A DNA stretch of 64,000 nucleotides from Heteronotia binoei (Eukaryota): positions 38,006,001-38,070,000 of the forward strand of contig NC_083229.1 in the NCBI RefSeq assembly GCF_032191835.1, given 5' to 3'. Made by a program: the position numbers and the translations under genes. Positions within the stretch are counted from its first letter, which is position 1. Each line of letters opens with the position of its first letter. The notes below the pieces were generated by a model that searched no databases, was not told the origin of the DNA, and saw nothing but the letters and a program-made list of their open reading frames with translations. This document shows, one piece after another, positions 4,161-11,944 of the stretch.

Positions 4161-4661
4161 CATAAGAACATAAGAGAAGCCATGTTGGATCAGCCCAATG
4201 GCCCATCCAGTCCAACACNNNNNNNNNNNNNNNNNNNNNNNNNNNNNNNNNNNNNNNNNNNNNNNNNNNNNNNNNNNNNNNNNNNNNNNNNNNNNNNNNN
4301 NNNNNNNNNNNNNNNNNNNNNNNNNNNNNNNNNNNNNNNNNNNNNNNNNNNNGGACCTCTGCTCCATATTTTTATGTAACCTCCTTTTGCAGCTGGCTAT
4401 GCTTGTAGCCACTGCCACATCCCGTGGCTATGAATTCCACATGTCAATCACCCTTTGGGTGAAGAAGTACTTCCTTCCATCTGTTTTAACCCAGCTGCTC
4501 AGCAATTTCATTGAATGCCCACAAGTTCTTGTAGTGTGAGAAAGGGAGAAAAGTACTTCTTTCTTTGCTTTCTCCATCCCATGCATAATCTTGTAAACCT
4601 CTATCATGTCACCCTGCAGTCGACGTTTCTCCAAGCTAAAGAGCCCCAAGCGTTTTAACCT
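4161..4661 (-). mobile_element. CR1 LINE 3' end (split by DIRS)
   Basis: RLKRLGLFSLEKRRLQGDMIEVYKIMHG C-terminus and a (TTCTTATG)-type 3' tail; contains an N gap. Confidence 0.92.
4219..4352. other. Assembly gap (134 N)
   Basis: Run of N within the CR1 3' end. Confidence 1.
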
Positions 4662-4846
4662 ATCTTCTTCGTGGTCTCTGTGCATCACACTTGTGGGATA
4701 CTGCGCCTGCGCCGGTCCCCAATAGGTATCTGTAAGAAAGCCTGGGAATTTTCTGCGGTCGGCGCCACTGGGCATGCGCAGGCGTCCCATTGCGCACGCC
4801 CAACAGCGCCATCGCGGTAATCCTGCCCGTTCCTTTCTGACCGCTG
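4662..4846 (+). repeat. DIRS left ITR
   Basis: About 4680-4846 is the reverse complement of about 10411-10575 with scattered mismatches. Confidence 0.93.
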
Positions 4847-5106
4847 CACGAAGAAGCTGCGTTTCCTCGTGTTCCCGGTCGGTGAGCTTCGGGTTTTACC
4901 CTTTTTTCCCCAGCCTCTGTATATATAGCCTGTTTGTTGTTTTCCTTAGAGTAGTAGTTAGTTTCTTAGTTAGTTAGTAAAAAAAAAAGACTTTGTATTT
5001 TTCCGGGTGCGTGTTGTGGCGGGTCGCCCTCCGGGGCCTTCCCCCTGTTGTTCCCTAGCTTTTTTCCCCCTCTCAGAGGACTCTGAGAGGATCTTCCCAG
5101 TGACGA

Positions 5107-7315
5107 TTGTCTATGGACAGTCGCTGGGGTTTTTTTAAGAGGTGCCAGGCCTGCGGGAAGAAGATTGCCCCTCCCGACGGCCATTCCCTGTGTCTTCTCT
5201 GCTTGGGTGAAGCGCACCGTGTGGAGGCCTGCCCACACTGCCTCCGCTTCTCCAAGCAAACCAGGAAGAACAGGGCAGCAAGGCTCTCGGCCGCACTGAC
5301 TGCCTCGGCACTTCGTCCTCCGAAACCAACGGCGGGTCCTTCGGCATCAGTACCGAAAATGGCGGCCGCCCAACCCCCGACGGTCCCATCCACCGATGTG
5401 ACTTTGGTCGAGGCGGAAGCTCCGAGGGAGCAACAGCCCGCGAAACGAGCCCTTGAGGCGTCGGTCGAGAGGCCTGCGAAGAAGCGACGGGAGGAGGCGG
5501 GCCGAGAATCCTCCAAGAAGGCGAAGAGCAAGGAGAAGCGAAAGCGACCACGCTCCACTTCACCTTCCCCCGACGTGTCGGCACCGATCGCCATCGAGCC
5601 GCCGAGAAGGGTTCCTCCCTCTCCGCTGCGCAGCTCGCCGACTCCAGGGGCCGGCGCGCATCGGCCGCATAGCCCTTCAACTCCAAGGGCTAGCGTCCAT
5701 CGGCCACGCAGCCCTCTGACTCCAAGGGCTAGCGCTCATCGGCATCGCAGCCCGCCAATCCTCGGGCCCAGCACTCATCGGCCGCGACCCCCAGCATCGG
5801 AAGTGGAGATCGACCTAACCCGTCGATCTCCATCGGTGGCATCCCGTCGACGGAGCGTCGGCTCGGCATCCGATGTTGAAGCAACGACATCGGCCGATGT
5901 GGCGACGCCCACAGCGCCTAAGCGCGTGAGAGAGAGGGAGCCGTCGGTCGAGCCTCGCCGCTTCCCACCGATACCCCCCTGGGAGCAGCATAGATAGCAG
6001 TCGACCTACCCCTGCTGCCTGCAGTACCATTGGTACCAGCCAGCGGAGCACCCGGAGTGGGAGCATCGGTCCGAAATGTCCTCGTTCTCCAGGACATCGC
6101 ACCGATCCAGACGACCATCGGTCTCGATCCCACCGGAGCGACGCGTCGCACCGACAGAGCCCCCGCACCGACCACCGACGCCGATCCAGTCGCCACGGAG
6201 GGAGCCAACATCACCCCTGTCGGCGCGCTCGGAGCACAGAGAGTCTTCGCCATCGGGGTCGGAGAGCGACGAGGAGAGAACCTGGGAACCCTCGCCGGAT
6301 CCCAACACAGCGGAGGACCTCCCAGTCTCGCCCTCTGAAGACCTGCGGTCCTATGCGGAGATGGTTAAAAGGATGGCAACCACCATTTCCCTACCCATCT
6401 CCCAGCCCAAGCCAGTTGTGGACGATAACGTTTTTGATATCATCCAACGGGACACCTCCGCGGCTGTAGCCCTGCCAGTGACCAGGGTCATACTACAGGC
6501 ACTCAAGGACCCATGGAAGAAGCCATCCTCGGCATCGGTGTCCTCGAGGAAGCTGGACCATATGTACAAGGTCCAGGAGACGGGGGCTGAGTTTCTCTTC
6601 ACGCACCCAAAACCGAACTCAGCCATCGTCTCGTCTTCCTCGAGGTCGCGCAGGGTGCATTCTGCCCCCCCCTGACAAGGAGGGGAAGAAATTGGATACC
6701 ATGGGCAGGAAGATCTACTCGGCGGGATCCCTGGGCACGAAGGTATCGAACTATGCGGCCTGCATGGCGAGATACCAGTACGCCATGTGGGAACAGCTGT
6801 CCCCCCTCCTGTCCTCCCTACCCGAGGACAAGAAAATGGCTGCCAAGAGACTGCAAATGGAAGGCCTGACGGTAGCCAAGCAGCAGCTAGCAGCAGCGAG
6901 GCACATGGTGGACGTGTCTGCCTCGGCCATCATGTCCGCCGTCTCCATCCGTAGACACTCCTGGCTGAGGTCTACCGCCCTACAGCAAGACACCAGGGCG
7001 CTCATCGAGGACTTACCCTTTGAAGGGGACGGTCTCTTTAGTACCACCACGGACAACGCCCTGCAGGAACTGGATAAAAACCTGAAGATCTCCAGGAGCC
7101 TGGGGGTTCAGGCACCCTCCAGACAACCCAGGGCCAGGCAGTGGAGCAGATCCTGGACCAGGAAACCTACCCACAAGCCACCCTCAGACCAGCAGTGGCG
7201 CCCTCGCTCCTCACAACCCGACAAGCCTGCCTACTCGGGTAACAACAGAGGTCGCTACAGCACCCAGCCCTCAGGCAAGCCTAAGGGGGCCCGCCCCTCC
7301 AAGCAGGGACTTTGA
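5107..7315 (+). pseudogene. DIRS gag (ORF1), interrupted by one nonsense codon and one +1 frameshift
   Basis: N-terminal Cys/His finger (CQAC...H..CLLC...H...CPHC); TAG at 5995-5997 with the frame continuing; C8 run at 6665-6672, where removing one C restores APPDKEGKKLDTMGRK; C-terminal part resembles the DIRS-gag/LAP2alpha-type domain. Confidence 0.85.
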
Positions 7316-9209
7316 CTTCTTTGTCCCACGCATCGTTGCCCCCACCCATTCCACTATCCGCCTCCGCCCCTTCCTGCCTGCCTGGGATCGGGTCTCCTCA
7401 GACAGGTGGGCCCTTTCCATCATCAGAGAGGGCTACAAAATAGACTTTGCTCAGATTCCAAACCAGTCCATAGTGATTACCACCCCTCCCTCCCCGCCTC
7501 TGCTGGCGGAGGTGGCCAACCTCCTACAGAAACAAGCCATAGAGATGGTTCCCTCAGGGGACATGGCGGGTGGTTTCTACTCCCGCTACTTCCTTGTTCC
7601 CAAGAGGGATGGAGGCCTGAGACCCATCATGGACCTTCGGAATCTGAACAAATTCATCCTGTACCAGAAGTTCAGGATGTCCACACTACAATCTATCCTG
7701 CCCCTCATCAACCAAGGAGATTGGATGGCCACCATAGATCTCAAGGATGCTTACTTCCATATCAGCATCCACCCAGAGTTCAGAAGGTTTTTGAGGTTTG
7801 CTGTGGGCCCGCAACACTTCCAGTTCACGGCCCTACCATTCGGACTCTCCACAGCACCCAGGGTGTTTACAAAAATGATGAGCGTAGTAGCTGCCCACCT
7901 CCGGTTGCAGGGAGTGATAGTCTTCCCATATATAGACGACTGGCTCCTGGTGGCCAGATCAAGGGAAGATCTGTCTGCTCGCATCACATCCACACTACGC
8001 CTTCTCGAGGCCCTGGGTTTGCAGGTCAACCTAGAGAAATCAAAACTCACTCCATCAAGGACAGTGCAGTTCATTGGGGCAGTACTGGACACAAACCTAC
8101 ATCGGGCGTTCCTGCCCGCCCAGAGGGCAGAGGACATCATCAACACAGTGCAGTTGCTTCAAAGACAAGGGTGGGGCACAGTACAACAGCTTCAGTGGAT
8201 GCTGGGACTGATGGCGGCGACGACAAGCGTGCTACTCTTCGCGAAACTGAGGATGAGAGACCTGCAGCTATGGTTTCTCTGTCAGTTCCGCCCAACCAAA
8301 GACTCACCTCGAAAGAGGTTCACTATTCCTCCTACGACGCTCCAATCGCTCCAGTGGTGGGAGTCGAAGGACAATATCTGCCAAGGAGCGCCCTTCCATC
8401 TCCCGGCCCCCACAGTGACCATCACCATGGACGCTTCCCTGTGGGGTTGGGGGGCCCACATGGACGGACTGTGCGTGGGGGGCCAGTGGCCTCCCAAGCT
8501 GGCCCTGCACCACATAAATTACCTGGAACTGCTGGCGGTACACTTTGCCCTTCGTTCATTCCGCCCGAAGCTGGCGGGAAAGACAGTGGCACTGCTCACA
8601 GACAATACCACCGCCCTAGCTTACATCAACAGGCAAGGTGGGACGGTGTCCCGTCGGCTCTGTGCACTCGCGATGGACTTGTGGACGAAATGCATCCAGC
8701 ACGACATCTTTGTGAAGGCCGCACATCTCCCAGGGGTCCTCAACATACAGGCGGACTCCCTGAGCAGAAGGGGGGCCTCACCACACGAGTGGGAACTTCA
8801 GTGGCGCTTCCTGCAACCAGTCTTCCAGCTTTGGGGGTACCCACAGCTGGATGCCTTCGCCACAGCAGACAACAAGAAGTGCCCCATGTTCTGCTCCAGA
8901 GGGGGGGCCGACCCAGCATCCCTGGGGGACAGACTCCTCATCCCCTGGGAGGGCCGTTTTCTTTACCTGTTCCCGCCCCTCCCCCTGTTGACGAGAGTAG
9001 TCAGCAAGATAGCAACGGAAAAGCCACGTTGCATCCTGGTAACCCCCTGGTGGCCTCGCCAGAACTGGTTCTCCTCCCTACTACAGCTGTCGGGGGGGAA
9101 CTTCTACCACTTCCCAGCGGAACCAGACCTCTTGTCGTCTCAGGGGGGGCACGTGCTGCACCACAACGTGCCACACCTGAAACTGACAGCGTGGCTTATA
9201 GACCCATAG
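7311..9209 (+). CDS. DIRS pol: reverse transcriptase, RNase H and C-terminal adenine-methyltransferase-like domain
   Basis: Stop-free from 7086 to 9209; YIDD at 7929-7940; RNase H D(ASLWGWG), E(LLAV), D(NTTA), D(SLSR); FPP motif at 8970-8978; first ATG only at 7545. Confidence 0.95.
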   Translation, partial: FDFFVPRIVAPTHSTIRLRPFLPAWDRVSSDRWALSIIREGYKIDFAQIPNQSIVITTPPSPPLLAEVANLLQKQAIEMVPSGDMAGGFYSRYFLVPKRDGGLRPIMDLRNLNKFILYQKFRMSTLQSILPLINQGDWMATIDLKDAYFHISIHPEFRRFLRFAVGPQHFQFTALPFGLSTAPRVFTKMMSVVAAHLRLQGVIVFPYIDDWLLVARSREDLSARITSTLRLLEALGLQVNLEKSKLTPSRTVQFIGAVLDTNLHRAFLPAQRAEDIINTVQLLQRQGWGTVQQLQWMLGLMAATTSVLLFAKLRMRDLQLWFLCQFRPTKDSPRKRFTIPPTTLQSLQWWESKDNICQGAPFHLPAPTVTITMDASLWGWGAHMDGLCVGGQWPPKLALHHINYLELLAVHFALRSFRPKLAGKTVALLTDNTTALAYINRQGGTVSRRLCALAMDLWTKCIQHDIFVKAAHLPGVLNIQADSLSRRGASPHEWELQWRFLQPVFQLWGYPQLDAFATADNKKCPMFCSRGGADPASLGDRLLIPWEGRFLYLFPPLPLLTRVVSKIATEKPRCILVTPWWPRQNWFSSLLQLSGGNFYHFPAEPDLLSSQGGHVLHHNVPHLKLTAWLIDP

Positions 9210-10228
9210 AGTTCTCGGGCAGGGTCCAAGAGGTCCTCCTAAATAGCAGAAAACCCTCCACCAGAGCGTCCTACGATAGGAAGTGGAGGAAGTTCTCGAA
9301 CTTTATGGCTGACCGGTCAGGCACACCAAGGGAGGCAGGCCTGCCGGCAATCTTTGACTTTTTGCTGTCCCTAGTCGATGCAGGCCTAGTCTTCTCTTCC
9401 ATTAAAGTTTACCTGGCAGCCATTTCTGCCTTTCACGAACCTGTGGGCGGATACTCCATTTTCGCCCACCCCCAGTCCAAAAAGTTTATGAGGGGGCTGT
9501 TTAGACTGCATCCACCATCTAAGCCTTTCACTCAGTTGTGGGACTTGACACTGGTCCTAGACATACTAACCAGGCGTCCCTTCGAGCCTATGGCCACATG
9601 CTCCCTGCAGCTCCTGTCCTGGAAGACTGCCTTTTTGGTGGCCATCACTTCCGCACGTAGGGTGGGGGAGCTCACGGCGATGCGTTGTGACTACCCTTAC
9701 CTAGCCTTTAGAGAATCTGGTGTCTCCCTGGCCCCAGACATCAACTTCCTCCCTAAGGTGGCCTCCCAATTCCATCTCAACCTAGAGGTTTGGCTACCAA
9801 GCTTTTTCCCTAACCCCTCCTCGGACGAGGAGCGTAGGTTGCACGCCTTAGACGTCAAGCGTGCCTTGCTCTTTTACCTAAAGCGCTCTAAAGCCTTCCG
9901 CAGGGACCAGCAGCTATTCGTCTCATACACTGCGCCCAGACTGGGCTCCAGGATCTCGTCACAGAGATTCTCGAAGTGGCTGACAGAGACCATCAAGATC
10001 TGCTATCTCCTAGCAAAGAGGCCGCTGCCGGGACCTGTCCGTGGACACTCCACAAGAGCGATGGCGACATCGGTGGCGTTCCTGAAGGGCGTGCCCTTGA
10101 CGGATGTCTGCAAAGCTGCTACCTGGTCTTCCCCGCATGCCTTCATGAAGCACTACTCGCTGGACGTGCATGCTCAACAGAGGACTCGGTTGGGGACTGC
10201 GGTTCTACAATCTGCTGTTTCCGGTTGA
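7316..10228 (+). CDS. DIRS tyrosine recombinase ORF overlapping pol
   Basis: Open frame from the gag stop to 10228; catalytic R (ARRVGEL, 9656), HSTR (10046-10057), W and Y (KHY, 10154). Confidence 0.95.
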   Translation, partial: LLCPTHRCPHPFHYPPPPLPACLGSGLLRQVGPFHHQRGLQNRLCSDSKPVHSDYHPSLPASAGGGGQPPTETSHRDGSLRGHGGWFLLPLLPCSQEGWRPETHHGPSESEQIHPVPEVQDVHTTIYPAPHQPRRLDGHHRSQGCLLPYQHPPRVQKVFEVCCGPATLPVHGPTIRTLHSTQGVYKNDERSSCPPPVAGSDSLPIYRRLAPGGQIKGRSVCSHHIHTTPSRGPGFAGQPREIKTHSIKDSAVHWGSTGHKPTSGVPARPEGRGHHQHSAVASKTRVGHSTTASVDAGTDGGDDKRATLRETEDERPAAMVSLSVPPNQRLTSKEVHYSSYDAPIAPVVGVEGQYLPRSALPSPGPHSDHHHGRFPVGLGGPHGRTVRGGPVASQAGPAPHKLPGTAGGTLCPSFIPPEAGGKDSGTAHRQYHRPSLHQQARWDGVPSALCTRDGLVDEMHPARHLCEGRTSPRGPQHTGGLPEQKGGLTTRVGTSVALPATSLPALGVPTAGCLRHSRQQEVPHVLLQRGGRPSIPGGQTPHPLGGPFSLPVPAPPPVDESSQQDSNGKATLHPGNPLVASPELVLLPTTAVGGELLPLPSGTRPLVVSGGARAAPQRATPETDSVAYRPIEFSGRVQEVLLNSRKPSTRASYDRKWRKFSNFMADRSGTPREAGLPAIFDFLLSLVDAGLVFSSIKVYLAAISAFHEPVGGYSIFAHPQSKKFMRGLFRLHPPSKPFTQLWDLTLVLDILTRRPFEPMATCSLQLLSWKTAFLVAITSARRVGELTAMRCDYPYLAFRESGVSLAPDINFLPKVASQFHLNLEVWLPSFFPNPSSDEERRLHALDVKRALLFYLKRSKAFRRDQQLFVSYTAPRLGSRISSQRFSKWLTETIKICYLLAKRPLPGPVRGHSTRAMATSVAFLKGVPLTDVCKAATWSSPHAFMKHYSLDVHAQQRTRLGTAVLQSAVSG

Positions 10229-10267
10229 CCGTCTTCCCACCTCCAGGTATGCCTTGCTTGCTAATCT

Positions 10268-10360
10268 CCCACATGTGTGATGCACAGAGACCACGAAGAA
10301 GATAGACAGGTTGCTTACCTGTAACTGTAGATCTTCGAATGGTCATCTGTGCATTCACAC
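10268..10360 (+). repeat. DIRS internal complementary region (ICR)
   Basis: 10268-10303 is complementary to 4662-4697 (1 mismatch) and 10304-10360 is complementary to 10567-10623 (1 mismatch). Confidence 0.95.
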
Positions 10361-10410
10361 TACCCGCCCTCCTTCCCCACTGCTGACGGTCTCCCTTTAA
10401 TAGGAGCTTT

Positions 10411-10623
10411 CAGCGGTTATGAAGGAACTGGCGGGATTACCGCGATGGCGCCGTTGGGCGTGCGCAATGGGACGCCTGCGCATGCCCAGTGGCGCCGACC
10501 GCGGAAAATTCCCGGGCTTTCTTACAGATACCGATCGGGGTCCGGCGCAGGCGCAGTATCCCACAAGTGTGAATGCACAGATGACCACTCGAAGATCTAC
10601 AGTTACAGGTAAGCAACCTGTCT
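10411..10623 (+). repeat. DIRS right ITR with terminal extension
   Basis: Inverted copy of the left ITR plus the ICR-complementary terminal segment. Confidence 0.93.
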
Positions 10624-11944
10624 TTCTTCATAGGGAAAGTGTTCCAAACCTTTAACCATTCTAGTTGCCCTTTTCTGGACTTTTTCCAGTGCTGTAATAT
10701 CCTTTTTGAGGTTCAGTGACCAGAATTGTACACAGTATTCCAAATGATACTGGCTTATTTGTTTTCAGTTCCCTTCCTAATAATTCCCAGCATGGCATTG
10801 ATCTTTTTTATTGCACTCGCAAACTGTCTTGACAATTTCAGTGAGTTATCTACTATGACCCCAAGATCTCTCTCTTGATCAGTCTCTGTCAGTTCACACC
10901 CCATCAACTTGTATTTGTAGCTGGGGTTTTTGGCCCCAATGTGCATTACTTTGCACTTGGCCACATTGAACCTCATCCGCCACGCTGACGCCCACTCACC
11001 CAGCCTCAACAAATCCCTTCAGAGTGCTTCACAATCCTCTCTGGTTCTCACCACCCTGAACAATTTAGTGTCATCTGCAAACTTGGCCACTTCGCTGCTT
11101 ACTCCCAACTCCAAATCATTTATGAACAAGTTAAAGAGCATGGGACCCAGTACTGAGCCCTGCGGCACCCCACTGCTTACTGTCCTCCACTGCAAAGACT
11201 GCCCATTTATACGCACTCTCTGCTTCCTATTAATGAGCCAGTTTTTGATCCACAAGAGGACCTGCCCTTTTACTCCATGACTCTCGAGCTTACTAAGGAG
11301 CCTTTGATGAGGAACTTTATCAAAAGCTTTCTGGAAGTCAAGGTAAACAACATCTATTGGGTCCCCTTTGTCCACATGTTTGTTCACCCCCTCAAAGAAA
11401 TGTAACAGGTTAGTGAGGCAAGATCTTCCCTTACAGAACCCATGCTGAGTCTTCCTCAATAACCTGTGTTCATCAATGTCCTTGATAATGGTTTCTACCA
11501 ACTTTCCCGGTGTTGAAGTCAGACTGACTGGCCTGTAATTTCCCGGATCTCCTCTGAAATCCTTTTTAAAGATGGGGGTGACATTTGCTACCTTCCAGTT
11601 CTCAGGAACGGAGGCAGATTTCAATGAAAGATTACATATTTTTGTCAGGAGATCCACAAGTTCAACTTTGAGTTCTTTCAGAACTCCTGGATGTATGCCA
11701 TCCAGATCTGGTGACTTATTAGTTTTTAATTCGTCAATCAGTTGTAGGACCTCCTCTCTTGTCACCTCAATCTGACTCAGGTCTTTCAACACCCCTTCCA
11801 AAATTAGTGGTTCTGGAGCGGGCAAACACTTCTCATCTTCCACAGTGAAGATGGGGGCAAAAAATGCATTCAGCTTCTCAGCCATTTCCCTATCCTCCTT
11901 CAGTAATCCTTTTACCCCTTGGTCATCCAAGGGCCCCACTACCA
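10624..11944 (-). mobile_element. CR1 LINE ORF2 RT region, 5'-truncated (split by DIRS)
   Basis: LDFQKAFDKVPH, GVPQGSVLGP and FADD motifs; frameshifts and deletions present; rejoins 4661 in frame. Confidence 0.95.

Follow-up and report, generated by a model that had tools for sequence, protein, structure and literature searches.

A conserved octamer and probable recoding signal at the gag stop codon of a DIRS1-like retrotransposon

An extensive overlap of the recombinase ORF with pol, in which the catalytic domain sits in the non-overlapping 3' end, has been reported in about half of 28 DIRS1-like retrotransposons examined, including lizard, frog and fish elements (Piednoel et al., 2011, PMC3266345). 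The overlapping ORFs were described as early as 1985; nevertheless, no published expression mechanism for DIRS elements was found in the descriptions consulted, which do not state that the overlapping frame starts at the gag stop in frame with gag, nor that the stop context is conserved, although mention of the in-frame gag-stop-recombinase arrangement in other accounts (Cappello, 1985; Goodwin and Poulter, 2001, 2004) cannot be excluded, and a full-text search of the comprehensive 2016 review of frameshifting showed no occurrence of "DIRS" (PMC5009743). Several well-characterized recoding systems offer points of comparison. In bacterial prfB (release factor 2), a programmed +1 frameshift occurs at CUU UGA C, where peptidyl-tRNA-Leu moves from CUU to UUU while a poorly recognised UGA-C waits in the A site, a shift that needs a Shine-Dalgarno-like stimulator 3 nt upstream and is autoregulated by RF2 levels. 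The antizyme (OAZ1) +1 frameshift of animals takes place at UCC UGA U and uses a conserved 3' pseudoknot and polyamine sensing, whereas the gag-pol junction of the retrotransposon Ty1 shifts at CUU AGG C, where the slow A-site codon is a rare Arg codon. Stop-codon readthrough is known at UGA-CUA(G), as in alphavirus nsP3/nsP4 and human OPRL1, and at the gammaretrovirus or Tca2 gag stop. Reporter work has further demonstrated that termination, readthrough and +1 shifting compete at weak stops, and that the P-site codon steers the outcome (PMC9841425).

A DIRS1-like element was analysed in a 64,000-nucleotide stretch of the Heteronotia binoei genome (NC_083229.1, positions 38,006,001 to 38,070,000; hereafter, the window), in which a first-pass annotation had proposed that CUU-UGA-C at the gag stop could yield Gag by termination, Gag-RT/RH/MT by a +1 slip and Gag-YR by readthrough. 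The underlying observation was confirmed: gag ends AAG CAG GGA CTT TGA C, pol lies in the +1 frame, and the gag frame reopens after the TGA and remains stop-free for 971 codons (Table 1). Three corrections are nonetheless required. The frame that follows the TGA, which had been described as the YR frame, encodes the recombinase domain only from just after the pol stop, its first roughly 638 codons being a Pro/His/Gly/Arg-rich overprint of pol with no Pfam hit; no methyltransferase family was detected by Pfam (E <= 0.01), and the "MT" label was not confirmed; and gag in this copy is broken twice, so that the window's own element is dead and cannot make the proposed products.

Table 1. Features of the DIRS1-like element in window coordinates; L numbers denote individual DIRS1-like loci used for comparison.
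Position	Strand	Feature	Supporting observations
4660..4846	+	Left inverted terminal repeat	Arms 4685-4846 / 10411-10572 are 93% complementary and arms 4660-4698 / 10267-10305 are 97% complementary; GC content rises from about 0.30 to 0.50 or more at about 4400
5113..7315	+	gag (putative capsid-like ORF1), broken in this copy	Starts at ATG 5113 (MDSRWGFFKRCQAC...), in-frame stop at 5995-5997, frame change near 6665, ends ...PSKQGL* at TGA 7313-7315; weak Pfam LAP2alpha hit on 6692-7312; tblastn matches to gag of relatives at 34-45% identity; most related RNA-library contigs differ in length by one base at 6665
7310..7317	+	Conserved octamer CTT TGA CT, the proposed recoding site (CUU in the P site, UGA in the A site, C and U at +4 and +5)	Present in window, L001, L002, L003, L086, L089, L090 and L091; L087 has AAC TGA CT
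7311..9209	+	pol (RT / RNase H plus the conserved C-terminal region), +1 relative to gag	Frame (TTT GAC TTC...) open from the stop at 7083 to TAG 9207-9209; first ATG at 7545; RLRPFLPAW...W..II.EGY motif; Pfam RVT_1 (E 6e-26) and a weak RT_RNaseH hit; C-terminal block DxFA...FPP...W invariant in one alignment; about 2000 homologues, the best 50% identical; best homologues are reptile and amphibian DIRS-like proteins at 45-51% identity
7316..9229	+	Spacer "X", gag-frame continuation overprinted on pol (-1 of pol)	Stop-free, against 12.3 stops expected; 31 stops in the third frame; not conserved as protein
9230..10228	+	Tyrosine recombinase domain, in the gag frame	Ends at TGA 10226-10228; weak Pfam Phage_int_SAM_1 hit (1.2e-3, below the curated cut-off); tblastn matches of 41-53% identity to the matching part of relatives, in the same frame relation
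10267..10629	+	Right inverted terminal repeat and internal complementary region	Pairs as for the left repeat, and 10298-10361 / 10566-10629 (97%)

The three comparative predictions of the first-pass annotation, namely a conserved YTT-TGA-Y motif, pol in the +1 frame and the absence of a stop between gag and the recombinase, were each tested and, taken together, support its reading. Within the window's own deep clade (bootstrap 100/99), CTT TGA CT is kept in 6 of 7 intact elements, across path lengths of about 1.4 substitutions per site and a pol identity of about 50%, and in 2 further copies, even though the surrounding roughly 200 nt are diverged and full of indels; TGACT is the only invariant block in the 228-column alignment of this region, and the bases that follow UGA-CU vary among the 7 clade members (CUC, CUU or CUG). 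As the conserved C at -3 and U at +5 fall on pol codons whose amino acids differ between elements (D/A/T/I before, S/F/W after), selection at the nucleotide level rather than the protein level is indicated. The motif is not universal across the superfamily, however, where the last sense codon varies (TCC, CCC, CAA, AAG, AAA and others). The frame plan is more widely shared: pol is +1 of gag in 48 of 59 DIRS1-like loci from metagenomes and assemblies whose gag could be placed, as well as in L086, L087 and L089, and the recombinase, wherever it could be placed, is in the gag frame (41 loci). In those 41 loci, a single TGA or TAG, never TAA, separates gag from a roughly 2.9 kb open frame ending in the recombinase. 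These counts are not phylogenetically independent, and most of the loci are metagenome contigs of unknown host.

The overprinted frame is selectively maintained. It contains 0 stops in 42 of 42 elements, against 12-38 expected from synonymous shuffling (the single truncated locus, L051, with 94 pol codons, expects only 2.8), whereas the third frame has 19-78 stops; in the window, a stop-free overprint of 631 codons was never reached in 500 synonymous shuffles. Its amino-acid sequence is nevertheless unconstrained, as dN exceeds dS in this frame in 9 relative pairs (dS between relatives is saturated, and the only mildly lower dS of pol relative to gag or YR was given no weight). Moreover, the frame is open from the gag stop and not from an ATG: the first ATG lies 24-1629 nt downstream (957 nt in the window), which leaves 6831 pre-ATG codons without a stop across 51 elements. 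Likewise, the gag stops look leaky, with 38 TGA, 13 TAG and 0 TAA, whereas 16 of 83 pol and YR stops are TAA (p = 5e-4); the +4 base is C or G in 47 of 51 (p = 5e-6), and UGA-CUN occurs in 20 of 51. Pol often has no start of its own, as 28 of 51 elements, including the window and all five CCC elements, have no pol-frame ATG before the conserved N-terminal motif, although L001, L002, L003 and L086 do have pol-frame ATGs upstream of or near the stop. Elements with pyrimidine shift-prone codons showed only a trend toward lacking pol ATGs more often (14 of 20 against 13 of 31, p = 0.08, uncorrected for phylogeny). The pol frame upstream of the gag stop is open no further than chance allows (median of 261 nt against 272 nt in shuffles), which fits entry at the stop itself, and a canonical -1 slippery heptamer at the pol end, sought as another route to the recombinase, was found in only 1 of 42 elements.

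A scan of viral contigs for relatives found nothing, one protein (P0010, Pleurodeles) gave no DNA, and searches of sequencing runs found only small shares in one metatranscriptome study; the contigs recovered are short (about 80-540 nt), come from many diverged copies and show presence, but cannot show transcripts, ends or splicing. Genome-annotated copies (L004 from Chrysemys, L088 from Varanus and L091 from Pogona) are decayed or have gag and pol fused by indels and thus say little about the intact state; the fused gag-pol models in lizard and turtle annotations seem to be copies in which an indel has hard-wired the shift.

On this comparative evidence, the gag stop of this family is probably a programmed recoding site, an interpretation held with moderate confidence. 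In intact copies, most ribosomes would stop at CUU-UGA-CU and release Gag; while the UGA, slow to decode and in a leaky context, waits in the A site, some ribosomes would let the peptidyl-tRNA-Leu slip from CUU to UUU and continue at GAC to make Gag-Pol, and others would decode the UGA with a near-cognate tRNA and run through the spacer to the tyrosine recombinase, making Gag-X-YR. One short signal would thus set the ratio of the three products from a single unspliced RNA, although that ribosomes actually shift and read through, and in what proportions, is inferred. No significant RNA structure was found in the 90 nt after the stop in six clade members (z-scores from -0.03 to 2.63, none shared, with pseudoknots not modelled), so any recoding would rest on the short signal alone and could be inefficient. 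In addition, the clade member L087 has AAC instead of CTT, and many last sense codons outside the clade (CAA, AAG, AGA, CAG, TAC) cannot re-pair in +1, so a P-site slip at the stop cannot be the general route to pol. If confirmed, the site would add a productive two-way recoding event at one stop to the known repertoire, would explain why a 630-codon frame with no constrained protein sequence is kept free of stops, and would give annotators a rule for recognising intact DIRS copies and for avoiding mis-called genes.

Among the alternatives, the likeliest, though still unlikely, is that only readthrough is programmed at this stop, with pol made through reinitiation after gag termination, non-AUG or internal initiation, or a shift elsewhere in the gag/pol overlap. 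The readthrough signatures hold across the whole superfamily, the last sense codon is often not shift-prone, some elements carry a pol-frame ATG close to the stop (e.g., L087 at +16, L005 at +19 and L002 at -23), and a G-run lying 9-12 nt upstream of the stop in the fish-like clade could be another shift site. Conversely, more than half of the elements lack any pol-frame ATG in the entry zone, and within the window's clade the CTT codon is as well kept as the TGA, which readthrough alone does not require; furthermore, CTT, TCC and CCC recur before the stop in separate clades, and these are the P-site codons of prfB, of antizyme and, it would seem, of some antizyme variants. More doubtful still is the possibility that only the +1 frameshift is programmed, with the recombinase made from an internal start or a separate RNA and the long open frame kept for some other reason. 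The established prfB site, the lack of a pol ATG and the existence of ATGs inside the overprinted frame favour this view, yet the frame is open from the gag stop itself, long before its first ATG, it is not a conserved protein that needs its own reading frame, and no other reason for 42 of 42 stop-free overprints suggested itself. Least likely is the absence of recoding, wherein the octamer is kept by double coding (Leu-stop in gag, Phe-Asp in pol) or by shared descent and pol and the recombinase come from spliced or subgenomic RNAs (e.g., via the AG at 7401), for although the expression of DIRS proteins has not been worked out in any species, the flanking residues in both frames are free to vary while all eight bases stay fixed, including wobble positions, splicing would not need a 630-codon stop-free overprint in frame with gag, and no joint at the gag stop or at 7401 appears among the 14 joints listed for RNA-library contigs, which are themselves too short to exclude splicing.

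A broader and more tentative proposal is that a single leaky stop codon is the ancestral translational switchboard of metazoan DIRS1-like retrotransposons, setting Gag:Pol:recombinase stoichiometry, with different clades having tuned it through different P-site codons (CUU, UCC, CCC, AAA, CAA) and 3' contexts (CUN, or GGR-UGC). Such a site would be the first programmed site known to use both readthrough and frameshifting productively and would explain the long-puzzling ORF overlap of DIRS elements, which is the feature observed here.

The site shares its heptamer and proposed slip with prfB, yet it belongs to a eukaryotic retroelement, and the upstream stimulator and the autoregulation are bacterial features with no counterpart in a eukaryotic host; readthrough in the zero frame has no role in prfB. 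With antizyme it shares a stop-codon-stimulated +1 shift, here only proposed, and a pyrimidine-rich P-site codon, and six of the DIRS1-like relatives carry TCC before the stop (five as TCC TGA and L067 as TCC TAG); it differs in that no significant 3' structure was found. Ty1 likewise presents a retrotransposon gag-pol junction with CUU in the P site and a +1 slip of tRNA-Leu (only proposed here) with no 3' structure, but its A-site codon is not a stop, so there is no termination or readthrough branch. Lastly, as in the readthrough systems, a gag or upstream ORF is separated from downstream enzymes by one in-frame UGA or UAG with C at +4, and other clades have UAG/UGA-GGR-UGC, which recalls the MuLV UAG-GGA context; the window, however, has CUU-C rather than CUA-G after the stop, and the readthrough frame does not encode pol but runs through the overprinted spacer to the recombinase, while pol lies in +1.

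A single DIRS1-like tyrosine-recombinase retrotransposon was identified in the window, where it is the only copy in the 64 kb; it is GC-rich (0.50-0.67, against about 0.35 in the flanks) and is bounded by inverted repeats that, together with a further inverted pair, give the ITR-plus-internal-complementary-region layout of the family. This copy is nevertheless dead, as gag carries an in-frame stop and subsequently changes frame; because most related contigs in RNA libraries differ in length by one base at exactly 6665, the latter break is private to this copy. In the same libraries, contig depth is 10-100 times higher over the right terminal repeat/ICR than over the coding part and is high even in the run of another organism (X3); terminal-repeat-only derivatives may be abundant.

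Coordinates of the element and its features in the window
Feature	Position	Remarks
N run	4219-4352	134 bases; about 300 bp upstream of the left terminal repeat
DIRS1-like element	about 4660-10630
Inverted repeats	4685-4846 / 10411-10572	93%
Inverted repeats	4660-4698 / 10267-10305	97%
Further inverted pair	10298-10361 / 10566-10629
Start of gag (ATG)	5113
In-frame stop in gag	5995-5997
Frame change in gag	near 6665
C-terminal half of gag	6692-7312	weak Pfam LAP2alpha hit (E 2.7e-4)
Upstream limit of the open pol frame	7083
CTT	7310-7312	last sense codon of gag
TGA	7313-7315	gag stop
C	7316	base after the gag stop
pol	7311-9209	RVT_1 at 6e-26; +1 frame
First ATG in the pol frame	7545
Recombinase part	about 9230-10228	matches that of relatives at 41-53% identity
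End of the open gag frame after the TGA	10228
Right terminal repeat/ICR, raised contig depth	10236-10400

The first-pass annotation, which had described gag as ending in CTT-TGA-C with pol in the +1 frame and with the frame directly after the stop remaining open, is correct as written. One qualification is needed concerning its designation of that last frame as the recombinase frame: the recombinase domain occupies only the last 332 or so codons, whereas the 638 codons before it are a Pro/His/Gly/Arg-rich overprint of pol with no family hit.

A search with the pol protein returned about 2000 homologues, the best of which are only 50% identical and come from reptiles, amphibians, and unnamed assemblies, and DNA was obtained for twelve of these. 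In six of the relatives (loci L001, L002, L003, L086, L087, and L089) the plan is identical, with gag in one frame, pol in the +1 frame relative to it, the recombinase (where the contig reaches it) in the gag frame, and exactly one stop, a TGA, in that frame from gag onward. Six of the seven intact members of this clade, which has 100/99 support and whose members are about 1.4 substitutions per site apart, read CTT TGA CT at that stop. The exception, L087 (positions 1642-1665 of that locus), reads AAC TGA CTT and has a pol-frame ATG 16 nt after the gag stop, where the gene caller starts pol; this may represent a switch to reinitiation. In the nucleotide alignment, TGACT is the only invariant block around the junction, and the flanks have diverged with indels. 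The C before TTT and the T after GAC fall on pol codons whose amino acids differ between elements, so the constraint is on the bases. Two decayed copies, L090 and L091 (Pogona vitticeps), also keep CTTTGACT, although in L091, where an indel appears to have fused gag to pol, the motif is read out of frame. The copies annotated as proteins in public genomes (L004 from Chrysemys picta, L088 from Varanus komodoensis, and L091) have gag and pol in one frame, with L004 and L091 carrying them as a single ORF; these look like indel-fused, otherwise decayed copies and like an ascertainment effect that biases protein databases, because gene callers favor copies with a hard-wired shift.

A scan of metagenome contigs with a pol alignment yielded 80 more loci at 32-42% identity. 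Of the 59 loci from elsewhere whose gag could be placed, 48 have pol in the +1 frame of gag, and in all 41 whose recombinase lies in the gag frame, that frame has a single stop and then stays open to the recombinase end. The overprinted frame has 0 stops in 42 of 42 elements (the window included), whereas synonymous shuffling of pol predicts 12-38 stops for every full-length element and the third frame has 19-78. Moreover, this frame is open from the gag stop rather than from an ATG, as the first ATG lies 24-1629 nt downstream, which leaves 6831 pre-ATG codons without a stop. Its amino-acid sequence is unconstrained (dN is 0.36-0.61 and exceeds dS in nine pairs), while pol shows strong purifying selection; the overprint therefore behaves as a spacer that must be translatable but need not mean anything.

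The gag stops themselves are TGA in 38 elements, TAG in 13, and TAA in 0, whereas 16 of 83 pol and recombinase stops are TAA (p = 5e-4), and the base after the gag stop is C or G in 47 of 51 (p = 5e-6). UGA-CUN, the classic leaky context, occurs in 20 of 51 elements and UAG/UGA-GGN in 13, often as GGR-TGC; these counts are not phylogenetically independent, but the contexts recur in separate clades. Interestingly, several unrelated clades (loci L016, L017, L025, L031, L051, L052, and L061) share stop-GGR-TGC-SSN after a UAG or UGA (e.g., CCC TAG GGA TGC CCA and TCC TGA GGG TGC GGC), which recalls the UAG-GGA context of gammaretroviral gag readthrough. A separate and unexplained bias was noted at the pol/recombinase boundary, where the pol stop is TAG in 30 of 46 elements and is followed by C in 20 of 46.

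With regard to how pol is reached, 28 of 51 elements have no ATG in the pol frame between its upstream stop and the conserved N-terminal motif, and the pol frame is open upstream of the gag stop no further than chance allows, which fits entry at or near the stop. The last sense codon is CTT, TCC, CCC, TTT, or GTT in 20 of 51 elements, and TCC and CCC each recur in four separate clades; CTT and TCC are the codons of the prfB and antizyme sites. The link between shift-prone codons and the absence of an ATG is, however, only a trend (p = 0.08). In other clades the codon is CAA, AAG, AGA, CAG, or TAC and varies between close relatives, and a slip at the stop therefore cannot be the universal route. 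Those clades may use another site, candidates for which are a nearby ATG and, in the fish-like clade, a run of 5-6 G (e.g., GGCCGGGGGGC) that is kept 9-12 nt upstream of the gag stop in loci L047, L054, L062, and L056 (and more loosely in L053 and L042), although the last sense codon there varies (CAC, CAG, TAC, AGA, CGT); this run could be another frameshift or slippage site for pol.

The site is real and deeply conserved in its clade, and it sits at the one position where three conserved reading-frame relations meet. The three-way reading, in which one stop yields termination, a +1 shift into pol, and readthrough toward the recombinase, is the most economical explanation, although it has not yet been shown by experiment and we regard it as only about as likely as not. 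Versions in which only one of the two recoding events is programmed remain possible, if less favored. No joint at the gag stop or at the AG at 7401 appears among the joints listed for RNA-library contigs, though those contigs are too short to exclude splicing. There is no significant RNA structure after the stop in six clade members, and a canonical -1 heptamer at the pol end is almost never present (1 of 42).

The overlap of pol with the recombinase is well known, as is the location of the catalytic recombinase domain in the non-overlapping 3' end (PMC3266345). An expression mechanism, by contrast, is given in none of the papers that we were able to read, and full-text searches pairing DIRS with readthrough, recoding, or ribosomal frameshifting found nothing relevant. 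The site proposed here would differ from known kinds of recoding site in that readthrough and a +1 shift would both be productive at one stop. In this regard, reporter experiments have shown that termination, readthrough, and +1/-1 shifting compete at weak stops and that the P-site codon steers the outcome (Loughran et al., 2022; PMC9841425), which makes such a two-way productive site mechanistically plausible.
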